Below, piece by piece: positions 3,451 through 40,564 of a DNA stretch of 64,000 nt. The stretch's first letter is position 1. The number at the start of each line of letters is the position of its first letter. The DNA lies in NCBI GenBank assembly GCA_965644295.1, contig CBFFRP010000298.1, positions 248,001 to 312,000 of the forward strand. The letters are read 5' to 3'. The translations under genes were made by a program, and so were the position numbers. Source of the stretch: Paraphysomonas bandaiensis (lineage: Eukaryota > Protista > Chrysophyceae). The notes beneath the pieces are model-generated. The model searched no databases. It was not told the DNA's origin and worked only from the letters and a program-made list of their open reading frames with translations.

Positions 3451-6400
3451 CTAATCTGAAAACTCTCCTATATCTTCTTCGCATAGGGTTACATTTCTAT
3501 TCTCACTCCGTGCAGGGTGTGTGTCAGCAGGCACTACTGGAGCAGGAGTGTAAACCCTATTGCTACCTATTGCTCGCACACAATGAAGAAGAGGTTGTGG
3601 AAGAACACTAGGATTTCCACCACACACAGACCTATTGTTGAGAACTTCCAGACCTCTGTACGCAGAACCACCCACATCAGTGGGCGACATATACCTGACG
3701 TAAGGAACAAGCGTGATTATCGTCTCTGCAGGGGAGAGGGTGGAAAGAGAGGAATAAGAATCTGATAGAAGGGACTTCAAGGCAGATACGTTTCGAAGAA
3801 CACGCTGTTGTGCCACCCTACGTAACAGCAAACCCAGTAATTTAATATAATACTTGTACAAGTACACACACAACACAGGTAATACAGGCATATTCAGACA
3901 GATAAAGTACATTATGTCCAAAGATCTGGGGCGCCGGACTGGGGTCATGCCTTTAGACTCAGATCTTTTAATACTAGTTCCTTCAGTAGTCCTTACTCGC
4001 TTACTTCCTATTTCCGGTACATCCTCAGCAGTCAAGTCCACTACTTGGGAAGCTCCTGTGGTGCAGAAGAGGATAAGATAATAATGAAATGAGCGCATAC
4101 ACGAAACCAGCAGTAAGTATGCATAGCTGAATACATACAATGGATGATAAAGTATAAAGATACAGTATATTTCACCTGCATCTGAAGATGTCACAGGTTG
4201 GAGCCACACCGAGGAGGAAACAGAGCTCGCCCTACTAATTATAGATTCCGCAGCATCCGTGAGGAAAGATGTATCGCTTCGGTCAAGTTGCAACGATGTC
4301 GTGTATTGCCTGTAAAAACAACGCCATTAAAGACAACAAACCAAGTATGCTCTCTACACTGTTTTTTGTTCGATAATAACACTCTTTCGAGCATAAAAAA
4401 TGAAAAAAAATACTCACCTTTGCATAATGATATCAGCATCACAAAAGTCCTCCAAAGCCCTCTAATTAAAAGCTTACTACATATATAAGGTACAGAAATT
4501 CACCAAACCTCTGCCCTTTCCAAAGCATCCAATTCTTCGTGAGGTAATGGAACTTTGCGGTTCTGTATATCCATAAATATAGCTGATAGATAGTCATATT
4601 GTTATAGAAGCAGACGACGCATAGTAATTTCATTGAGCGTTACCTATGCAGTTGTGTTGTAGAAACGCTAGGGCGATATCGAGAGGAAAACCCAGACTGC
4701 ATATAATAAGGTATTAGATGATCTCACCATTCATCGTAAACAGTAGATGTCACTTCTATGTACACTGTCGTACTCACTTTTGCAGCACTTCCTCTGGAGC
4801 AAAAGGAAGTCTATAAGATTCATCTAAAGGACAAGGAAAATGTCAGCGAACTAGACGGGCATCTCTGAACTATAGTACAATAATCTCTTCTATATACTTA
4901 TTGATAAATACCTAGTCGTGAGTGCAACAGTTTCGCCACTCCGTAAAGAGAAGAGAATGTTGTATCTCTTTTACCACTGGATTGAGTGTTGTCCGTGATG
5001 GCTACACAGGTATTCCCCCCTAGCATCAGTGCTTGCAGCTGCGATATTGCATGGCTAGAATATATCCGTACACGATAAAATGTTACCATCACGGTATGAA
5101 TTCGACATGAAATAACGTAACATACAAAGTAAAGAACACTCTTACCGCAAATCTCCTAAGCATGATTCACTAATAAACTCGATAGTACGCTTACTGGGCA
5201 TAACTGGTTGGGGAAGCTGCTTTTCTGAACGTTTCCAATGGCCGTTAAGCTCAGAGAACTCCACGGCTACGTCTATTATTAGAACAGAATACACTACAAG
5301 AAAACAACATACCTGCTATACGCGAGAGGATCTTTTGGGCATTGAGAGGAGTAATAGGCGTACAGTATATAACCTCCAAGTTAACCCTATAGAATAAATA
5401 AAGTATTGAGTCAACAAAATTACAATATCATAATCACATCTGTTTGAAGATTTTACTCTATGTTAACCAGAACATACAAACATGCGCCCTTCATGACACC
5501 ATAGTGTATTTGTTACGTTGATGCTTCGTATATCTCAACTACACAGGCCACTACACAGACAGCACACTTCATACCGGTTGTGCAAATGCTTCGGAATGAG
5601 CTCGTCCACCGCAAAAAAACTATCATCTTTGCCGGGTACATCACTCAATATAAGTACCACCGGATGACGCATCGCCACTAGAGTCTTAACTATTCCCACC
5701 CCTCTTTCGCGAGAAGAGATTGGCTCCAAAAGGAGGTTTGGGTCATGAACAAGAATAATATGACCATTTTTACTGACAGTTCTATCTTCTGAATGACCTT
5801 TCACTTGGCTGTTGCTCTTACTCGAAGTAGAGAAGCTGAGAGCCTTGTATGAGGACCGCAACGCCAAGTCGGCGACCTCCTGAGTGCGTATCACAATAAG
5901 ACCAAAAGTATGCATAAGTCACCACAACACTACTCATTACTATCACAGCTACACCCACCGTACGAGACGAAGTGCTATAAACTTGAGACCTTGAATAACG
6001 TTTTTCTATAGGTAGTATTGTATTGCCGGCTTGCCAGTCCCCAGTTGTGTTAGGCGATCCAGTTGAGTCGCACATATCGTCCGTCCACTCAGTCATGGAT
6101 ATACCTAGCTCCTGTAAAGAGCAATAGGATCAATTTGATCATATGCGTATAGCAATATCCAATATACCGAACACAAAACTTTCACTAACGTGCTCTTGCA
6201 GCAGCCAGAGCAACCACACAACACGAGTACAGGCTGTAGACCACTCTCACTGGATCTCTGCAATACATGCTTCCTAAGCCACTCTTGAACGCTTTTAACA
6301 CGAGAACTGTGTGTCGCTAGTTCCTTTGATGACCTTGGCTCGTACTTATCTTGCCAAAGTATATGAGATTTCGTTGCACTGGTTGATATATCTGATTCTA

Positions 6401-14090: not shown

Positions 14091-17000
14091 ATGAAACAAT
14101 CGGGTTGGAACAATAGATTTAATATCGACACCACTACAACCAACAATAGCAAAACATCAGTTGCAATAACAAGAAAAAAACCCAAGAGATACATTGCTAT
14201 GAATGGTACAGAGGTGAAGTCGACTATAAATTCTGGTCCCACTAAACTCAAACATAAAAAAAAAGTGAAGCCTAAAATAAAATCATCTCCAGCGACTAAA
14301 CCACGAATATATTCACCAGTGGAAGCAACTGTATCTCCTATGCCGGAAAAACGACGTCATCACTCGATATACAAGAGCAGATCGCAACAGCTGGAGTCAC
14401 CCACTCGACCTTTTTCACTGCCGTTGATTGAGAAGACCCACGGTATCAGTGGTGAAGAACAGGCAAAGAGATCTTCCACTGGTGATCCTCAGCCTTCTCG
14501 ACTTGCCCCCACAGTTTCCAATACATCATTATCTCTTGAGATCGACGTTTCGTCCAGCAATGTGCCAACTGCCAAAGAACGCAGACAGTGGCGTGAGTTC
14601 TCTACCTTAACAGAAGATCATAGGGACACAGACGGCCTCTGTGATTTAGTCCGACTTGTTAGTATTGGAAAGGGTTCTTCCGCCTATGTCTACAAGTCTG
14701 TCCTTTTTCCTAGCCTCAGAGTGGTGGCTGACAAAGTTGTGGTCATATCAAATAAAGAAAAGAGTTCGCAGTTAGTTCGGGAGCTGAAGTCACTGAGAGC
14801 TACTGTCCTCGGTACCAGCTCAAGTAGTAGCACCAACAGCTCGAAACCCACCTCGTCTAATATAGTACGGCTCTTGGAGGTCTATCCCAATCCCAGAGAC
14901 GGTACAATCTCCGTATGTTTGGAGTACATGGATGGAGGGTCTCTGCAGGATGTTGTGAGGGGAGGTGGATGTCAGTGCGAAAGTGTGCTGGCAGGTCTTG
15001 CGAGGCAGATGCTTCGCGGTCTGGCATTTCTCCACAGCAAAAGACACATTCATAGGTGTGCCTACATTGTGTATTCCTATTATAGTGAGATGGAAATGCA
15101 TTTATTCGGTTGTCTTGCACTCTGCAACTGTACATATTCGTGAGCTTTTTAATATTGACTTTATAGGGACATCAAGCCTGGGAATATTTTAATGTGCAGC
15201 GGACGGGGAACAACTAATGGGTCAGATGGAGCAGCAGTGAAAATTTCGGATTTTGGATTATCCAAGGAATTGGAGAAAGGCCACAGTCTCGCAGACTCGT
15301 TTCTGGGAACCTTCCACTATATGAGCCCGTGAGTTCACTTTTGCATGCTGTATAGTCCTATATGCAATTAATTGTGATGTTATTCTTTTGAAGTTGATGA
15401 ATGTAGCGTTATTTATGTTATACATCCGTTTCACTCAACTGACTTTCTGGCGGCAGAGAGCGAATTGCTGGGGGGGACTATTCGTTTTCGTCGGATATAT
15501 GGAGCTTCGGAATGACTATCTTGGCTGTGGCCCTAGGAAGGTATCCGTTTTCTCCAGGTAGCCCCAGATTAGGCCTCACCGGTAAAGGTTCTGATACAGC
15601 TGGATACGGTAAAGAGGGTGAGGGGGGATACTGGGCGATTTTACAAGCTATACAGGAAAGACCATCTGTTCGGTCTCTATTGCAGTCCTGTCAGCACTCG
15701 TGCGAGAGTCACACCCATTCATTTGGAATGCCAATGTCGGCGATGACTCAACAATTTACTCAAGATTTTCATTCATTTCTATCTCTAGCCTTGCATAGAG
15801 ACCAAAAAAAGCGCCCCACTGCCGCGTCCTTACTTCAGCATGCATTTTTGACCAATACCACTACAGCTGTAGAAGAGGATGCGACGAAGGAATTCATTCT
15901 TCAATGCTGTGCTCGTCATAGTGAACACATAGAATCCCGTGGTGTCAGTGCGACCATGAGGCCACGTGCTACACGGGCTAGGGCTTTATCTGGAGATGAA
16001 GATGACGGAAGAGAGGGCGGCAAAACTGCTGACAATAGTGTGCATATACGCCAAAGGAGTCGTGGTAAAGCAACTGGTGTTGTTGACCCATCCAAGCCGC
16101 GGTCAAGTGGAGGGAAAAGTTCTCAAGATCCCGGAATCAAGCAGCTGAGGAAGATACTCAGGGCATATAGGGAATACATGAATCGAACTTGGGGTGGTGC
16201 CAGCGGTCTTGTCGCGTCTGCAAGGGCGCATGGACAACCGATGAAAATGGAAAGCATCATTCTTCAAACCATTGCGCCACTTCTGGAACCCAGCACGATA
16301 GTCAACCTATCAGTGCAGCTCAATGCGCCAGTTCGGCTAGTGAAGAAGGGTTTCCGGAAAATAATAAGTGAGATAAAGGGAATAGTGGAGCAAGTAGCAG
16401 AGCTAGACCCAGAGGCGGGAGCTTGTTCAGTCGGGCTCTCGACCTTACTGGAAGGAGGTTTTCCCCAAGAAAACAGGACCAGCAAGGATGCTCCTACCAA
16501 ACCTATGCCCCGCGCATCTCCTGCAAAGGTAGTATCGAGTCTAGAAGCTTCCCGTATCATGAGCCCATCTGGTACTGGGTCCCCTGTAGTGCGTCGAACT
16601 AGCAGCGGGTCGAGCGGAATGGTTAGTCGTCTTGACTCAAGCGATGGCTCCGATGCTGCAGCTGTAGCGGAGATTCGTGCACTTGTATCCAGCGGCCGGC
16701 AAAATATGTCTGTAGCCCTTCATAGCAGCCCGGAACGCGTACGCAGTTCCGTCATTCCTGACGCTGTTGAAGAAGGAGGGGAGGATGATGAGGATAGGCA
16801 GTATCTCGAGGGATTCGCGGACACTTACGATGAAGAGGATGTGGGATTTTCATGCACAAAACCGGAGCCGATTACGGTATCTGACTCTTCGCGGGCATCT
16901 CACACTCACAACCCCGGTAGCATGTCGGCATCTATATCAGATAAATCCGTTCCACAAGCTTCTCTATTGGGCAAGGACCCGTCTGGTGTATCAATGTCAC

Positions 17001-17314
17001 CAGGTTATAAACCAAGAATATCTCCGTCAGAACCACAGTCTCTCTCTGAAAAAAGTAGTGTAAATATATCAAACCGACTTGCTATGTCGCCCATTAGTTC
17101 ATCAAAGCGATCTGTAGTGAGTGGATCGCCACATCAAAGCTGTTGGGATGATAGCAAGACGACAACTGACTCAAAAGAGCCTGTCACTCCAGTAGTTATA
17201 GCAAATCATGGCGAGAACAAACGTGAAGTAGAAACAGAAGAAAGTGAAGATGAATATGACGATGATTATGAGGATGACGATGAATTTTATGCGGACGAAG
17301 AATTCGACGACTAA
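14091..17314 (+). CDS. MAP kinase kinase (STE7/MEK family); exons 14091-15055, 15167-15328, 15457-17314
   Basis: IGKGSSAYVYK, ISVCLEYMDGGSL, HRDIKPGNIL, DFG, activation loop SLADSFLGTFHYMSPERI, SDIWSFGMT, GRYPF. GT-AG introns restore the frame. Confidence 0.9.
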
Positions 17315-33459: not shown

Positions 33460-34052
33460 TGTTTGTTGAGTTTCGCTGTTTAAGCAATTAAAAGCTGTAA
33501 TTCTAAGGTATTGGAAATATGATCCTTAGTCGAAGAACACAGTAGTACTTATATGAGAACTAACAGTATGATAGCTACTGTAGTAATATAGCTGAATAAT
33601 AATATTGATAATACAACGTAGTGACGATGTAAGATCGTATGAGAAATGATTGGTCGCAGAGATAACATGAAATAGATGAATGAGAAGATATATTGTTTAT
33701 AATAGTTTAAACAAGATTAATGAGGGAATACACGTCCAGTTAATTTAGAACATCATCCAATTCTGTCATAACTTGACAGTGTTGAGTTTTGCTGTTTGAG
33801 AGCAATTGAAAGCTGTTGTTCAAAGATATTTGAATTATGACTGTTAAAGGAAGAATACAGAAGTGGTTAACTGAAATATGAGCTAATTGCAATCGTAGTA
33901 ATGAAACGAAAATATATTGACCATTGACCGTATAAAATCGTGATATCTAAGATTCTATAGGAGTATCAACTAGTGACAAATGACTTTAGCGATTGACAGT
34001 GAATGGCAAGTGATAATGATCATAATTTTTTATGTTACTTCGTGTATCTAAC
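33460..34052 (+). repeat. Two adjacent family-B repeat copies; the second is interrupted by the LTR element
   Basis: Units start at ~33465 and ~33780. The sequence after the LTR element (38634 taacttataatc..agca...gagtg) matches the family-B continuation at 18426. Confidence 0.65.
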
Positions 34053-34635
34053 TGTAACGACTACGGGTGATTGAGCCTCGCTTTCATGACTAACATTGCT
34101 GGTCTTATCATCCCTGTCCATGTGCACAGGTGATGTGGGGTAGGATAGTCTTCTCACAACACTCTTCACTTAACTTCCTCTTCTTACTCTTTACTTCGCT
34201 ACTTCTTAACTTTCAACTCAACTACAATATCAACTTTCACTATTATATCTAAAACTCCATATCCTTCTACCTATATCCCCATAGTTAATTCTAGAAGTGG
34301 TTTCCCAGCCATAAATAGCTAGTTTTCTACTTCCAGAAATAATCATATAGAAATCCCTTAACATCCTGCTATCTACTCTTATATCATCCTACAGAATACC
34401 TACGTATACCATCATAATACTGTACGGGTTATCATGAACGTCCGTTACATCCGTATGTACGGGTAGTTCCGGTACACTCCAACCCTATATCTGGCCTTAA
34501 TACTCGTATCTTCTAATCTAATCATAACTACCATCTACATCTCATCTCATACTACAACCTACATCACTTCATCTTATTCTTCAGCCATAACAACCTCCTA
34601 AATCACCCATACTTGTCATACCCAATTTTGCTACA
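34053..34635 (-). repeat. 3' LTR (583 bp)
   Basis: Direct repeat of 38053-38633. I count 4 substitutions and one 2-bp indel by eye. Preceded on the minus strand by the PPT. Confidence 0.97.
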
Positions 34636-34725
34636 CTTCCCCCTAATCCAAGACCTGAATAGGTCCAACAACATAACGATTTGGCTTCATATTGACCACA
34701 TGAACTCTCACAGATTCATCCTGTA

Positions 34726-37700
34726 TCATTGTCTTACACAATACTGGTTAGGGCATTGTCTTGTCTTCCACACAGTATTGACCCTCCGTTCTTCCGTGAT
34801 ATTACCTTGATACACTGGATGTTCTGCTACCCGATGTTTCGTCTTAGCCATCCATTTCATTGTTTCTGCGTATGACTTTCCTTTCATGACAACAGGTATA
34901 CCCTCTGGTGTTCGCACCACAAAAGCACGATGCTCTTTCAACTCCTTCACCTCCGCTCCTCCCCATAAGCATGAAGCCGTCATATTAGGTATCAGATCAA
35001 ACTTACACTTCCATATGCTTTGTATCGGATGTCCAGTCTTCAATTCTCCCAACATTTCACCATAATACTCCACTCCGTCTATCCGCATACATAAATATAC
35101 ATACTTTGTCACTCGTTCCGGACATCTTCCTTGTCCTGTAGCTCCCATCACCAGGTATTGTTGATCCCTTGGATACTCATGAACTTCTAAACCCATTTCT
35201 TCTGCTAGCCCTTCATGCATGAATGCTCCCTCTGATCCACCATCCACATGAATTGCCATCGGAATTGTCTCTTCTCTTACAATCGCTTCTCCACACCACC
35301 AAGTTAAAGTATCCATCCTTATCTTCTTATCATCATGTTGTGCCGGTGACGTCATCGTATGTGCCACACTGACTTTTCTATTAGACACCTGCTGATTTCC
35401 ATCCACTGACTTCACCGTCTCTAATCCTCTGGTTTCCTCTACCCTTTCCTTGGTCGGCTCTCCTACGGTCCGCACATGATGTAAGACATTCCTCATACTC
35501 TTCACCTGCTCTTCTTTCGCATCAGCTACCATTTGTACGAATTTTCTTTTCAACACATCTCCAAGTTCTTGCCACGCCTTGCTATTTTGCTTCATGACCT
35601 CAAATATCTTCTCTAAAGTCTTCGCCTCAAACTTAGCAAATCTCCATGGCTTATATCCGTTAAACTCCGCACATTTCATATATGTCCCATCATCTTTCTT
35701 CCTATCATCTCTAAATGGACAAAAACGGTTCATATAGTGTTTAAACCCACATGTCTCACACTTAAGGAACTTCCATGGTCGGGTACTTCTTTCTAGTCCA
35801 TCTATCCTTCGTTCACACTTTTCTGGAGCTGCTCTTCCCGCATACACTCCATGTGACCTTACCACCTTCTCATTCTTACTGTTAAGGCTGTCTTGATCCA
35901 CTATCCGAGGTACAATCTGTGCAACAGTAGACACTAAAAAGTTCCGATCATATTGCACGTTCCTCACTCCCATACACTGCTTTATTTGGATAATGCTCTC
36001 CACTTCATCTGCTACCCTTTTACCTACTCGTGGCATATCTATAGTCTTCACCTTGAACTTGTGATATAACTCTCTCTCTGGCTCAGTTACTCCCGCTTGC
36101 GTAATTAAATATCTTAACTCCGTCAGAGACTTCTCAAACGCCTGTGGTGATTCGTCGGATAACTCGAACCTATCGATCTCCATCATTAATACTGCAGGAT
36201 CCATCTTTACCCCGAAGGCTTCTGTAAACAATATGGAGAACTGATACAGTGCATATCCCCATGCCACAACATCCGTCTCAGGGGTCTCCTCTGCTCGTCT
36301 GTTCCTATCTATGTCCATCTCGAAGTCACCTGATGCCATTCTCCATCTCACCTCTTCAGCTAACTCTCCTTTGAATACTGTTCCTCCTCTTATCTCCGCT
36401 AATATTCTCATGGGTGACATATTCGCAGTATGCGCTGCTGCATAAAGACTATCAAAGAACTGGACACAATCCACTCCCTTCACCATTCCTGCTGAGCGTC
36501 CTAAAGCATCAAAGTCTATAGGTTGGAATCTCAGCTTTCCTGCGGTCTCCATCCTCATCCATCGAGGTATAGGTATCTTCCCCAATAAGTCAAACACATG
36601 CTGCGCAACATTCCGAGTCCTCAGAAAACTCTGACACTTTTCCTCTAACTGCCAATCCAGACTACTCTTGTACTCCTTTCCCACCATATTACACCAGCGG
36701 CAGAATGTCTTATATCCACATGTCTCTGCTTCTTCCCGTGTCATAATAGTCTGTATTCCTGGTAAAGGCCCTCTCATAACTCCCTTCCTATATACTCCTG
36801 CGTCGTTCTCCCATTCATCACTATCTGTTTCATCAACTTCCTCCATCATTACGCGCATCCTGTCTAAGGTCCTTCTATTGCTATCACACATGCTCTCTCC
36901 TTTCTGTATCCACAACATCCTTGCCTTCTCTGATAACTCCTTCCTAGCAGCTAACAGCGCCTCTTGCTGAGCCTCCACATACTGTATCCTCTCCCCTATT
37001 CGGTTTAGTTCAGTCAGCTGGCTGAGCATCTTTATACCCGTCTCCATACTACCACTCAATAGTCTTCTTCGATTCCGGAGCCAATATTCACACGCCTGAC
37101 GGTGCGCTGCAGTCAACCCTTCATTCCCTACTCCTATTTCTAATTCTTTCATCAACAGTCGATGCAACTCTCTTTCACTCTGTACACTTCTACTTAATCT
37201 CCCAATCTGTCCTTTTACACTCCGTTCTCTACTAGGCTCCACCAACCATTCAGGTACTCTCATCTGCTTTTCTATCTCTTCTCCAAGACCTCTGGATAGG
37301 TCCCTAAAATTCACTTCTCTCACATAATCCTCTCTTTTACTATATCTAGGGCCTCCTGATGGGCCCCTCATATCTTCTTCAGTTGCATAATCCTCTCTTC
37401 TACTATATCTAGGACCTCCTGATGGGCCCCTCATATCTTCTTCAGTTGCATAATCCTCTCTTCTACTATATCTAGGACCTCCTGATGGGCCCTTCAAATC
37501 TTCATCTTTCATATAATCATCTCTTCTGGCATATCTAGGACCTCCTGATGGGCCCCTCACATCTTCATCTTTCTTGTAATCATCTCTTCTACTATATCTA
37601 GGACCTCCTAATGGGCCCCTCACATCTTCTTCAGTTGCATAAACATATCTTCTTTTAATATTCTCTTCTCTTCCTGTGCTCCTCCACGAGCTCTTCATAT

Positions 37701-38121
37701 CATCTCTACTACTCCTATCCCCCATCTCCAGGTCTCTGCCTCCAAGAATAGGATCACGCATCCATTCTATCTGCTCTGTAGACCTTCCAGACCAATTGGG
37801 TTGGGTTCCACCTTTCCTGTCATCCATACTCTGCATCCTCAGCCCGTGCTCCAATAGGTCCTTCTGTGCATGGGACCGCAGTTCCTCCTTAGTCTCCTGT
37901 CTCTCCTCTCCCTCATGGTCTAGGCTGATACTCTCAATGTTTCCCTCTTCTGGCGAAGGCTCTCTCTGAGATCGTGCCGATAGTGCGCTGGGTGACGCAT
38001 GGCTGAGTTGATCACTCTCAACCACTGTACCCAGCCCACGTTGTCCACCAAGTGTAACGACTACGGGTGATTGAGCCTCGCTATCATGACTAACATTGCT
38101 GGTCTTATCATCCCTGTCCAT
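34726..38121 (-). CDS. Gag-protease polyprotein (first ATG 38121; frame open from 38169)
   Basis: Coiled-coil/helical Gag-like region, zinc-knuckle-like CETCGFKHYMNRFC, retropepsin-like AIHVDGGSEGAFM...LVMGATG...CLWG. No YxDD, RNase H or DDE motifs seen. Confidence 0.85.
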   Translation of the reverse strand: MDRDDKTSNVSHDSEAQSPVVVTLGGQRGLGTVVESDQLSHASPSALSARSQREPSPEEGNIESISLDHEGEERQETKEELRSHAQKDLLEHGLRMQSMDDRKGGTQPNWSGRSTEQIEWMRDPILGGRDLEMGDRSSRDDMKSSWRSTGREENIKRRYVYATEEDVRGPLGGPRYSRRDDYKKDEDVRGPSGGPRYARRDDYMKDEDLKGPSGGPRYSRREDYATEEDMRGPSGGPRYSRREDYATEEDMRGPSGGPRYSKREDYVREVNFRDLSRGLGEEIEKQMRVPEWLVEPSRERSVKGQIGRLSRSVQSERELHRLLMKELEIGVGNEGLTAAHRQACEYWLRNRRRLLSGSMETGIKMLSQLTELNRIGERIQYVEAQQEALLAARKELSEKARMLWIQKGESMCDSNRRTLDRMRVMMEEVDETDSDEWENDAGVYRKGVMRGPLPGIQTIMTREEAETCGYKTFCRWCNMVGKEYKSSLDWQLEEKCQSFLRTRNVAQHVFDLLGKIPIPRWMRMETAGKLRFQPIDFDALGRSAGMVKGVDCVQFFDSLYAAAHTANMSPMRILAEIRGGTVFKGELAEEVRWRMASGDFEMDIDRNRRAEETPETDVVAWGYALYQFSILFTEAFGVKMDPAVLMMEIDRFELSDESPQAFEKSLTELRYLITQAGVTEPERELYHKFKVKTIDMPRVGKRVADEVESIIQIKQCMGVRNVQYDRNFLVSTVAQIVPRIVDQDSLNSKNEKVVRSHGVYAGRAAPEKCERRIDGLERSTRPWKFLKCETCGFKHYMNRFCPFRDDRKKDDGTYMKCAEFNGYKPWRFAKFEAKTLEKIFEVMKQNSKAWQELGDVLKRKFVQMVADAKEEQVKSMRNVLHHVRTVGEPTKERVEETRGLETVKSVDGNQQVSNRKVSVAHTMTSPAQHDDKKIRMDTLTWWCGEAIVREETIPMAIHVDGGSEGAFMHEGLAEEMGLEVHEYPRDQQYLVMGATGQGRCPERVTKYVYLCMRIDGVEYYGEMLGELKTGHPIQSIWKCKFDLIPNMTASCLWGGAEVKELKEHRAFVVRTPEGIPVVMKGKSYAETMKWMAKTKHRVAEHPVYQGNITEERRVNTVWKTRQCPNQYCVRQ
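37324..37642 (-). repeat. 63-bp coding tandem repeat, five copies (YATEEDMRGPSGGPRYSRRED)
   Basis: 63-nt period (agttgcataa at 37381 and 37444), giving a 21-aa unit in the ORF. Confidence 0.95.
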
Positions 38122-38633
38122 GTGCACAGGTGATGTGGGGTAGGATAGTCTTCTCACAACACTCTTCACTTAACTTCCTCTTCTTACTCTTTACTTCGCT
38201 ACTTCTTAACTTTCAACAACTACAATATCAACTTTCACTATTATATCTAAAACTCCATATCCTTCTACCTATATCCCCATAGTTAATTCTAGAAGTGGTT
38301 TCCCAGCCATAAATAGCTAGTTTTCTACTTCCAGAAATAATCATATAGAAATCCCTTAACATCCTGCTATCTACTCCTATATCATCCTACAGAATACCTA
38401 CGTATACCATCATAATACTGTACGGGTTATCATGAACGTCCGTTACATCCGTATGTACGGGTAGTTCCGGTACACTCCAACCCTATATCTAGCCTTAATA
38501 CCCGTATCTTCTAATCTAATCATAACTACCATCTACATCTCATCTCATACTACAACCTACATCACTTCATCTTATTCTTCAGCCATAACAACCTCCTAAA
38601 TCACCCATACTTGTCATACCCAATTTTGCTACA
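38053..38633 (-). repeat. 5' LTR (581 bp)
   Basis: Followed on the minus strand by CT and then the TGG-initiated PBS. Confidence 0.97.
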
Positions 38634-39071
38634 TAACTTATAATCTCAGCATAGAGTGAAAGTATTGTTCAGTTATGTTTTTCTAACATAAATAATTTCT
38701 ATGTGCAACTGACATGAATAAGTTGTAAAGTAAAATAGCTGATACCAGTAACTAAGCACAGTACAAAAAAATTAAAACTCTGATAATCATAATTGATCAT
38801 GCATTCTAATATGTGAAATTGGTTAACAACACTCCTTACGTCATAGTGAGGAGGCCAATTTCAACATTCCAACCACTATAACTGTCGTTAGTTCGGTAAG
38901 CCGTGAGAAGGCATAAATAATGAAAACTAGTTTGTTGTTTTACTGAAGTACCATACATACATAGATACATAGCACACTAAAGTTTCTTGAGAAAACATAT
39001 ATATGAAGGAGATGAACACATAACAGCAGTAATTTTCAAAATCACAGACGCTGCCTGCCCATGGTATGCTA

Positions 39072-40151
39072 CTACGGCTCAAGGTCACTATGAAGCTTAT
39101 TCGTCAGGTCTTTGTTTCCAAGTTGCAGTGTGCAGGTGACTGGTAGGTGGTCGCTCCCGTATTCTCGGAGCGCCCATTCACTTCTGGCGGCCGCCTGTCT
39201 GGTCTGAAAAACCATCACAAGAGCAAGCATCAGTGTTACTGGTAACAATAACAACAATAAAATAACCAATACTGCTTTTCGCCAAGCAGATGGTAAAACC
39301 GACTCCTTTAACCAACCAAACGTGGTGTGTACAGGAAGTGTACCGATTACGTAAGGAAGGGGACACTCCGGCACATCCGTGCCAGTTGTTTTCACAGCAG
39401 TGGTCGCAAATATATGATCAATACGTGCCGACCCAGGCTTACCATATACACTAGCTGTTGTAATATTCTTGAAACCCTCGAAGCAGCAGGTAAAAGTATG
39501 CTTTGACTGAATATGGGATAAAGCATGCGATCTCAGTTCCAGATTAAAATCTCCGCCCCAAATTACTACAGGATCGGTGTCGTCACTACCCTTTATATTA
39601 ACCAAATCATTTACCAGCTTCTGGTGTAAATATAGCATTTGTCGACCAGCTAACGTAGTGCTATCAGCATCTGCATGCGTGCACACAAATGTCACCCGCC
39701 GCTTCCATTTCGTGCTATAGCAGTGTGCCAGCAATGAGAAATTCCCTCGTGAATATTCAGGCACCGCTTGACCATCATCTGGATCAATGCACACTTGTTC
39801 AAAGGTAACCTCAGTAAACTCTGACTTAGACAGCATTATACAGAGACCATTCTCTCTCGGCTCAAAGTTGGTGGAGGAAGTTAACCAGTTGGACCACAGT
39901 TTAGCTGGAAATGGAGCGAAATGGATTGTATACTTCTCATCTAATTCCTGTGTAGTGCCTCGCATATTTTCCAATGATTCTGCTTCTACTTCCTCCATCA
40001 TAACAGCATCAGAGCTCAATTCCAATAATCTATCAGCCACAATTCGATTTCTAGCAGAGGGATCGAGAAGAGGAAGGGACCCGGATGTGTAGAGTTCGGG
40101 ACTTGCCCAAACTGGGGCAAGGATATTAAATGCTGTTACTTTTAAGGACAT
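39072..40151 (-). CDS. Endonuclease/exonuclease/phosphatase (EEP) family protein, intronless, with hydrophobic insert
   Basis: VTAFNILAP, VMMEEV, VCTHAD, IWGGDFN, RIDHIF, YGSDHLPV. Confidence 0.9.
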   Translation of the reverse strand: MSLKVTAFNILAPVWASPELYTSGSLPLLDPSARNRIVADRLLELSSDAVMMEEVEAESLENMRGTTQELDEKYTIHFAPFPAKLWSNWLTSSTNFEPRENGLCIMLSKSEFTEVTFEQVCIDPDDGQAVPEYSRGNFSLLAHCYSTKWKRRVTFVCTHADADSTTLAGRQMLYLHQKLVNDLVNIKGSDDTDPVVIWGGDFNLELRSHALSHIQSKHTFTCCFEGFKNITTASVYGKPGSARIDHIFATTAVKTTGTDVPECPLPYVIGTLPVHTTFGWLKESVLPSAWRKAVLVILLLLLLPVTLMLALVMVFQTRQAAARSEWALREYGSDHLPVTCTLQLGNKDLTNKLHSDLEP

Positions 40152-40564
40152 ATCAGAAAGGACAAGTCAAGGATTTATATATGGGTTCAGGAGGAACTTG
40201 ATATCCTTTAGCTGTGTGGGTATACATAGAGGGGTCACAGTGCAAGTGTGTGTGTGTGTTTTTTTGGTGATATGTGAGTATGCCGGTACTCTGTATACCG
40301 GTATACCGTACGAAGTATATTGTACAATTCAGTGGTTTTCATGGACACATGGGTGGGCATATTTTTTGGAAAAACACGGACAAAAACTACTCAATTCATA
40401 AAAATCTGGATATTTCTCAGTTTGTGGCTACTAAAAAATTGCCAATTGAACCTTTTCTCGGCACGTTTTTCTTTCCAAATGCAGTGCTGATTTTAAGGGC
40501 GATGAAAGATCACACACTTTAGATCCAGTCCATGGTATCAATCATCTTCCTCTGGCTATAGAAT

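Follow-up and report, generated by a model that had tools for sequence, protein, structure and literature searches.

The stretch analyzed here (the window) comprises 64,000 nucleotides of Paraphysomonas bandaiensis DNA, positions 248,001 to 312,000 of contig CBFFRP010000298.1; it is the host sequence that the analysis covered, and all coordinates below refer to it. Positions 34053 to 38633 are occupied by a long terminal repeat (LTR) retroelement. Its two LTRs are direct repeats of 583 bp and 581 bp, each running from TG to CA, that differ by four substitutions and one 2-bp indel (∼99% identity). The LTR sequence occurs in these two copies only within the window, with 0 matches expected by chance, and the element is flanked on both sides by the target-site duplication TAAC. 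An earlier note had listed these signals, together with a primer binding site (PBS) and a polypurine tract (PPT), and all proved to be present as listed; the sole point it left unstated was the strand. The only long open reading frame (ORF) between the LTRs lies on the minus strand, so the element is oriented that way and the LTR at 38053 to 38633 is the 5' LTR. In this orientation the putative PBS is a TGG-initiated 21-mer located 2 nt past the 5' LTR, and the PPT abuts the 3' LTR. The plus strand across the element is rich in C and T (GC skew, ∼−0.39), so that the coding strand is purine-rich. Scans of the 64-kb window for tRNA genes and against Rfam returned nothing.

The ORF has 1,147 codons counted from a GTG at 38169 and 1,131 from the first ATG, with a stop codon at 34726 to 34728. 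This ATG sits within the 5' LTR, and the frame passes uninterrupted through the PBS. The description of the ORF as an uninterrupted frame of ∼1130 residues without the enzymes of retrotransposition held up: Pfam detected no reverse transcriptase (RT), RNase H, or integrase in the ORF, and tblastn with full-length relatives found none of the three anywhere in the 64 kb. We refer to the two parts of the product as Gag and protease (PR), names that are putative and follow from position and short motifs. The features of the element are listed below. In the list, L006 is a contig of a complete relative, P0017 and P0025 are proteins of such relatives, and L001 to L005 are contigs of further copies.

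34049 to 34052, no strand: target-site duplication TAAC on the element's 3' side, identical to 38634 to 38637
34053 to 34635, minus strand: 3' LTR, 583 bp, TG..CA; 71 to 75% homologous to the LTR of L006
34636 to 34649, minus strand: PPT, GGATTAGGGGGAAG; L006 has nearly the same 31 nt ahead of its LTR
34643 to 34747, minus strand: remnant of the integrase C terminus, 34 codons plus stop; 22/34 residues equal the end of the L006 integrase ORF
34748 to 34763, minus strand: deletion junction; same sequence in L001 to L004, with L005 colinear across it
34726 to 38121, minus strand: Gag-PR ORF; last ∼820 residues 59% identical to P0017 residues 335 to 1181
34762 to 35322, minus strand: protease-like domain, ORF residues ∼951 to 1136 (numbered from the GTG); lies between the zinc knuckle and RT in P0025
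35233 to 35244, minus strand: D-G-G-S motif in the context HVDGGSEGAF, candidate aspartic-protease active site; invariant across lineages
35719 to 35760, minus strand: zinc-knuckle-like motif CETCGFKHYMNRFC, CX2CX3HX5C; conserved in P0017 and P0025 as CDTCGFKHYVDRFC
35875 to 36714, minus strand: conserved core of Gag, capsid candidate, ORF residues 486 to 765; 72.5% amino acid identity to L006
37323 to 37653, minus strand: 5.3 tandem 63-nt units encoding 21-residue repeats with the core RGPSGGPRYSRR
38030 to 38050, minus strand: PBS, TGGTGGACAACGTGGGCTGGG; L006 has the same 23 nt following its LTR
38053 to 38633, minus strand: 5' LTR, 581 bp, TG..CA, holding the gag start codon at 38119 to 38121; equivalent start codon in L006
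38634 to 38637, no strand: target-site duplication TAAC on the element's 5' side

Identity of the long open reading frame

Standard searches with the ORF were unrevealing. Pfam, queried with the whole ORF and with three segments of it at E values of up to 10, returned noise alone (HMG_box, NMU, and SKA2), and a PDB sequence search gave no match. A phmmer search of 1.84 billion cluster representatives recovered the ORF's own cluster and low-complexity matches to its repeats and nothing else; an exact look-up of the protein found nothing on record; and scans of metagenome contigs, with protein patterns and with a 26-nt LTR-PBS string, as well as one scan of viral contigs, produced no match. A word-seeded search with the C-terminal 690 residues identified P0017, a protein of 1,607 residues from the Tara Oceans contig L006, which is 67% identical over the region searched. 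The ORF aligns with P0017 and P0025 over their residues 2 to 1181, with 59% identity over residues 335 to 1181 and 38% at the N terminus. Past the point where the ORF stops, P0017 continues for ∼430 residues and ends at the contig edge within the opening motifs of an RT. P0025 (2,496 residues, from contig L007, and in the same 90% cluster as P0017) matches RVT_1, RT_RNaseH_2/RT_RNaseH, and SET. An integrase, with matches to Integrase_H2C2, rve, and SH3_Tf2-1, lies upstream of the LTR on L006, and by its layout this contig is an LTR-collapsed picture of a complete element. Two proteins of more distant lineages extend the comparison: P0019 carries RT, RNase H, SET, and integrase in that order, and P0018 carries RT, RNase H, and SET, after which its ORF ends.

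Since the ORF is homologous to the N-terminal ∼1180 residues of RT-bearing polyproteins from marine metagenome contigs, we conclude that it represents the segment from Gag through protease of a Ty3/gypsy-type polyprotein, which is usually encoded in one frame of ∼2800 codons. It is unmatched in Pfam and PDB, yet as judged from these alignments it is not an orphan. The peptide TLGGQRGLG, encoded at the PBS, is common to the ORF and P0017, and both the gag start inside the LTR and the frame through the PBS are kept in the complete relative (L006, ∼1700 to 1800). The earlier proposal of a nonautonomous element with a Gag-protease-type ORF is thereby sustained, in that the ORF is the counterpart of the Gag and protease section of a retrotransposon polyprotein. 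The profile search for an RT domain, which the note had named among the checks able to overturn that proposal, found none. The note's companion idea, that the unrecognizable Gag might represent an undescribed capsid system, is not supported; the Gag is something more ordinary, the N-terminal half of a Ty3/gypsy-type lineage with the order RT-RNase H-(SET)-integrase.

Gag, the N-terminal part of the polyprotein, extends over ∼950 residues ahead of the protease-like domain and has no profile match. Its single zinc-knuckle-like motif is conserved, with a spacing unlike the canonical CX2CX4HX4C. Synonymous sites in the Gag core are saturated between the window lineage and L006. An AlphaFold model of the core built from a 5-row alignment is all-helical, with a pLDDT of 42.8 that is too poor for comparison with known capsids; a Foldseek search of PDB with this low-confidence model gave a best E value of 2.7, and a PDB profile search with the Gag-PR alignment found nothing meaningful. 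The tandem repeats lie in the N-terminal third of Gag and are rich in Arg, Gly, and Pro. These 63-nt arrays vary in unit number and structure among copies of the element and are absent from P0017.

The protease-like domain is the best-conserved segment of the ORF, with 78% amino acid identity to L006 and a ratio of nonsynonymous to synonymous substitution rates (dN/dS) of ∼0.06. The pattern D[TSG]G[ASTG] has a single instance in the window ORF and a single instance in all 2,496 residues of P0025, where the order is zinc knuckle at 856, D-G-G-S motif at 1022, and RT from ∼1470. The motif departs from the catalytic D-T/S-G-A/S of retropepsins (family A2). No retropepsin profile of Pfam matched at E values of up to 10 for the window ORF or 1 for P0017, nor was there a PDB profile match, and a single-sequence AlphaFold model of the domain is strand-rich with a pLDDT of 37.6, too poor for use. 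The sequence around D-G-G resembles that of Ty3/gypsy proteases, a likeness that we take as a lead and not as a test. Because the domain is invariant in the complete elements of three lineages, it is somewhat more likely than not to be the working protease of this clade, and the window element's copy of it may then be active.

Deletion, further copies, and selection

Comparison with the complete relatives locates what the element has lost. At the DNA level it is ∼70% identical to L007 and L006 between the Gag core and the end of the protease-like domain, and the match resumes at 75% from 112 nt before the 3' LTR into the LTR. Between the two matching blocks ∼4.8 kb is missing, which in the relatives holds the unassigned domain after the protease, RT, RNase H, SET, and nearly all of the integrase. 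Outside the gap the ends agree closely: the LTRs of the window element and L006 are homologous, the 23 nt of identity after the 5' LTR span a CT spacer and the PBS, and the PPT with the first 8 nt of the LTR is nearly identical. On the 3' side of the junction are the last 34 codons of the integrase and their stop, still open and out of frame with Gag-PR, so that Gag-PR stops 11 codons past the junction; the stop codon of the ancestral integrase frame, TAG, falls inside the PPT. Homology to the protease end stops at ∼34763 and homology to the integrase tail starts at ∼34750, and the 12 nt at 34751 to 34762 are assignable to neither side. By these comparisons the element is a plain internal-deletion derivative that still carries an integrase tail remnant, and the deletion probably arose once. 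The RNA-packaging capsid system that the earlier note had entertained is not supported.

Five other contigs (L001 to L005) from four samples match the element at 94 to 98% and are colinear across the junction, whose aligned sequence is the same in L001 to L004. L001 and L003 come from JGI sample 3300017004 and L002, L004, and L005 from three ENA assemblies; overall they differ from the window copy by 2 to 6%. The ends of the contigs fall within LTRs, or the contigs are circularly permuted, which is the expected outcome when the two LTRs of a repeated element are merged in assembly. Assembly collapse was also considered as the source of the short form itself and was rejected: the junction recurs in independent assemblies, for which two different assemblers were used, and the integrase tail, although frame-shifted, has been kept from copy to copy.

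The ORF sequences of the two contigs from the JGI sample are ∼2% diverged from that of the window copy, and these contigs also show indels not found in it, a stop codon, and other repeat arrays, whereas the host gene next to the element matches its counterpart in the same sample (contig L008) with 5 mismatches in 1,260 nt. By this contrast L001 and L003 are paralogous copies and not the window locus.

The LTRs date the window insertion relative to the deletion. Within the window pair there are 4 mismatches in 581 positions (0.7%), and between the window LTR and those of other copies there are 9/581, 5/457, and 13/311 (1.1 to 4.2%). Since the deletion is common to all copies, it is older than their divergence; since the window pair is closer than the LTRs of different copies, the window insertion is younger than that divergence. 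We conclude from this order of events that the window copy was already Gag-PR-only when it inserted, which agrees with the recent mobilization that had been proposed for it. The idea that the short form might be a one-off deletion, against which the note had suggested looking for further copies, is answered by the identical junction in the five contigs.

One copy shows an asymmetry of its own. The parts of the L002 LTR are unequally distant from the window LTR (positions 1 to 456 are 98% identical and 3793 to 4103 are 94% identical), as would be seen if the copy were old enough for its LTRs to have diverged, if it were a recombinant, or if the contig were chimeric.

Selection was analyzed over ORF residues 300 to 1147 in five copies. 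Pairwise dN/dS between the window copy and the others, a calculation that the note had recommended, is 0.13 to 0.25, indicative of purifying selection. Of the variable sites among the five copies, 33 are synonymous and 39 nonsynonymous, where a synonymous fraction of 0.205 would be predicted under neutrality (p = 1.2e-6). Counted by branch, the ratio of synonymous to nonsynonymous changes is 15:8 for the window copy versus the rest (p = 4e-6), 1:8 for changes private to L001, the copy with the stop codon, and 4:11 for those private to L004, which has a 208-nt deletion; both of the latter look neutral. Between lineages (window versus L006), dN/dS in the Gag core and the protease-like domain is below 0.1. 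These substitution patterns indicate that purifying selection has acted on the ORF from the deletion onward, as the copies diverged. The uneven pattern among branches is what would be expected if lineages with an intact ORF alone keep transposing and their insertions then decay.

The element lies just downstream of a host gene and is oriented like it. This gene consists of one exon encoding 359 residues (39072 to 40151, minus strand) and belongs to the endonuclease/exonuclease/phosphatase family (Exo_endo_phos). An exact look-up of its product found nothing on record, and the closest matches with a named source are only 29 to 33% identical. L008 covers the region from 38918 to 40185 and ends 285 nt from the element's 5' LTR. 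Because this contig consists of just the gene and short flanks, like a transcript, it suggests a transcriptomic origin for sample 3300017004 and possible transcription of the element.

Two blocks within the LTRs are much better conserved with L006 than the rest of the LTR. The first (34307 to 34319 and 38305 to 38317) contains a TATA-like GCTATTTATGGCT on the element strand, conserved far above its surroundings; the second, of ∼100 nt (34380 to 34480 and 38378 to 38478), contains short palindromes based on CCGTAC. Both are candidate promoter or regulatory parts.

Elsewhere in the window, two adjacent plus-strand ORFs at 14091 to 17314 have the look of exons belonging to a single protein kinase gene: the first matches the Pkinase N-lobe, and the second reads like the C-lobe followed by a long Ser-rich tail. 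This exon pair marks the window as eukaryotic, with introns.

Mobilization and competing explanations

We consider it probable that the element is a nonautonomous derivative that makes its own Gag-PR and obtains RT and integration enzymes from a coassembling complete relative. It would have originated from a single-ORF element of Ty3/gypsy type, encoding Gag, the protease-like domain, the unassigned domain, RT, RNase H, SET, and integrase, when a deletion of ∼4.8 kb brought the final 105 nt of the integrase up against the end of the protease-like domain. The parts acting in cis are retained: PBS, PPT, LTRs whose ends are conserved, and, within the LTR, the start of gag. LTR-driven RNA would be translated into Gag-PR, which would assemble particles around its own RNA together with Gag-Pol that a complete relative supplies within that cell. 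The element's RNA would be copied by the RT and RNase H of this relative, starting from the PBS and PPT common to both, and insertion of the DNA by the relative's integrase would give the 4-bp duplication. Propagation would be restricted to lineages with an intact Gag-PR ORF, with the consequence that some copies are constrained and others are decaying.

Several points weigh against this account. No helper was found, and the window itself holds no RT or integrase. The nearest autonomous relatives (L006 and L007) have only ∼70% DNA identity and come from other samples, and no closer full-length partner appeared in the protein collection, where the searches could show proteins of up to ∼2800 residues. 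The other copies are short contigs ending inside LTRs, in which flanks, target duplications, and copy number are not covered. The capsid is a candidate only, its fold lacking support from a model or a profile, and the protease assignment is one of position and a short noncanonical motif, without support from Pfam, PDB, or a fold. The transcriptome nature of sample 3300017004 is putative and deduced from the shape of L008. Finally, the synonymous excess could stem in part from recombination with autonomous copies that are under selection.

A bolder version of the helper account would make the element a satellite of an undescribed marine-protist clade of single-ORF Ty3/gypsy elements, marked by SET between RNase H and integrase and by a D-G-G protease. 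The satellite would be kept because it supplies an excess of the structural half, which its parent makes only 1:1 with the enzymes. We regard this version as unlikely, though not negligible.

The alternatives fare less well. The strongest of them, still improbable in our estimation, holds that the family is kept for an effect of its protein on the autonomous element, either as a partner that provides extra Gag or as a copy-number brake that interferes with assembly; the element would remain a passenger in both cases. The relatives do encode Gag through SET in one frame (2,496 residues in P0025), the ORF of the short form is under selection, and its cis signals are shared with a relative. Against this, no helper was identified, and selection on the ORF is equally expected if Gag prefers the RNA that encodes it.

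It is quite improbable that the constraint was imported, with short copies refreshed by template switching or gene conversion with autonomous copies and the ORF itself not needed. Reverse transcription of the retroviral type recombines copackaged RNAs, and the two LTR ends of L002, at 98% and 94% identity to the window LTR, are compatible with mosaic copies (or with chimeric assembly). However, no autonomous donor sequence closer than ∼70% was found, and the decay of L001 and L004 shows that not every copy is refreshed.

A dead relic, produced by a single internal deletion at this locus and immobile ever since, is very unlikely and largely refuted. The element is present as a single copy in the 64-kb window, and the flanks of the other copies are not covered by their contigs; nevertheless, the identical junction recurs in five contigs from four samples that differ by 2 to 6% and have indels of their own, the window LTR pair is younger than the split from the other copies, and the target-site duplication is intact, the ORF uninterrupted, and dN/dS 0.13 to 0.25.

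We give hardly any credence to a host-domesticated capsid gene or a new RNA-packaging capsid system in place of a transposon: the ORF is long, intact, constrained, and unmatched in profile libraries, but it is flanked by near-identical LTRs, a target-site duplication, PBS, and PPT, it exists in several copies, some of them decaying, and the whole of it equals the N-terminal part of a transposon polyprotein.

Relation to known elements

The closest described counterparts are the terminal-repeat retrotransposons with GAG domain (TR-GAG) of plants, for which transposition has been shown in Arabidopsis ddm1 (PMC8704663). The window element resembles them in having LTRs, PBS, PPT, and a single ORF from the gag end, in lacking RT and integrase, in forming a family, and in its presumed mobilization by a related autonomous element. 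It differs in that its ORF runs on through the protease-like domain and is therefore not GAG only, and in that it comes from a marine-protist Ty3/gypsy lineage and displays its deletion directly, in the integrase tail. Despite the structural mismatch, its mode of propagation would be that of TR-GAG. Whether TR-GAG elements need their own Gag is an open point in the literature (PMC8704663).

Other nonautonomous elements share part of this design. Large retrotransposon derivatives (LARD) and terminal-repeat retrotransposons in miniature (TRIM) likewise have LTRs, PBS, and PPT without RT or integrase and depend on a helper; they have no conserved coding capacity, whereas the window element has a 1,131-codon ORF under purifying selection. 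Mouse IAP I-delta-1, and ETn with MusD, are deletion-derivative families that outnumber or ride on their parents. As in those cases, one ancestral internal deletion would have been propagated as a family through full-length relatives. IAP I-delta-1 and ETn are vertebrate endogenous retroviruses, however, and ETn has no coding capacity, whereas the window element keeps a constrained Gag-PR frame. Domesticated gag genes are single copy and have no LTRs or target-site duplication, a description that the window element does not fit.

Among autonomous elements, the order PR, RT, RNase H, integrase in the complete relatives, the TG..CA LTRs, and the short target-site duplication are those of Ty3/gypsy (Metaviridae-type) elements. 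The window element differs from these in lacking the whole enzymatic half, and its lineage differs in its very large Gag, in having D-G-G rather than D-T/S-G, and in the SET domain between RNase H and integrase. Yeast Ty1 starts gag within its 5' LTR and has its PBS inside the gag frame. The window element shares both traits, although Ty1 is of the copia type and autonomous.

The SET domain of the complete relatives, of the lysine methyltransferase type, follows RNase H in three diverged lineages and lies between RNase H and integrase in P0019. The Pfam matches are as follows.

P0025 (L007), residues 2095 to 2198: SET, E value 7e-11
P0018 (L010), residues 765 to 870: SET, E value 7.6e-14
P0019 (L009), residues 681 to 784: SET, E value 3.4e-8

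Our literature searches found no paper describing a SET domain in the pol of an LTR retrotransposon. The capture of DNA methyltransferases by retrotransposons is known (PMC5890265), and SET in this lineage would add another case in which a chromatin-modifying enzyme was captured by a retrotransposon.

Two further observations concern the complete relatives. Between the protease-like domain and RT they have a conserved, strand-rich region of ∼110 residues (P0017 ∼1181 to 1290; L010:370-720 in frame 1) that has no Pfam match and starts exactly at the point where the window ORF breaks off; its pattern may be that of a dUTPase-like barrel. Inside pol, there is a second copy of the PPT region that precedes the LTR (31 nt, 90% identical; L006:5877-5907 and L007:4298-4328). 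This internal copy resembles a central polypurine tract, and it lies in the stretch that is deleted from the window element.

To our knowledge, nearly all documented cases of nonautonomous LTR elements with a retained gag are from plants. The window element offers a case outside plants in which a single, datable deletion event, proof that the short form moved after the deletion, and selection on the Gag-PR frame while some copies decayed are all read from sequence. For annotation, the finding means that the 1,131-residue "orphan" ORF and its relatives in marine data sets are to be read as Gag-PR of transposons and not as host genes.

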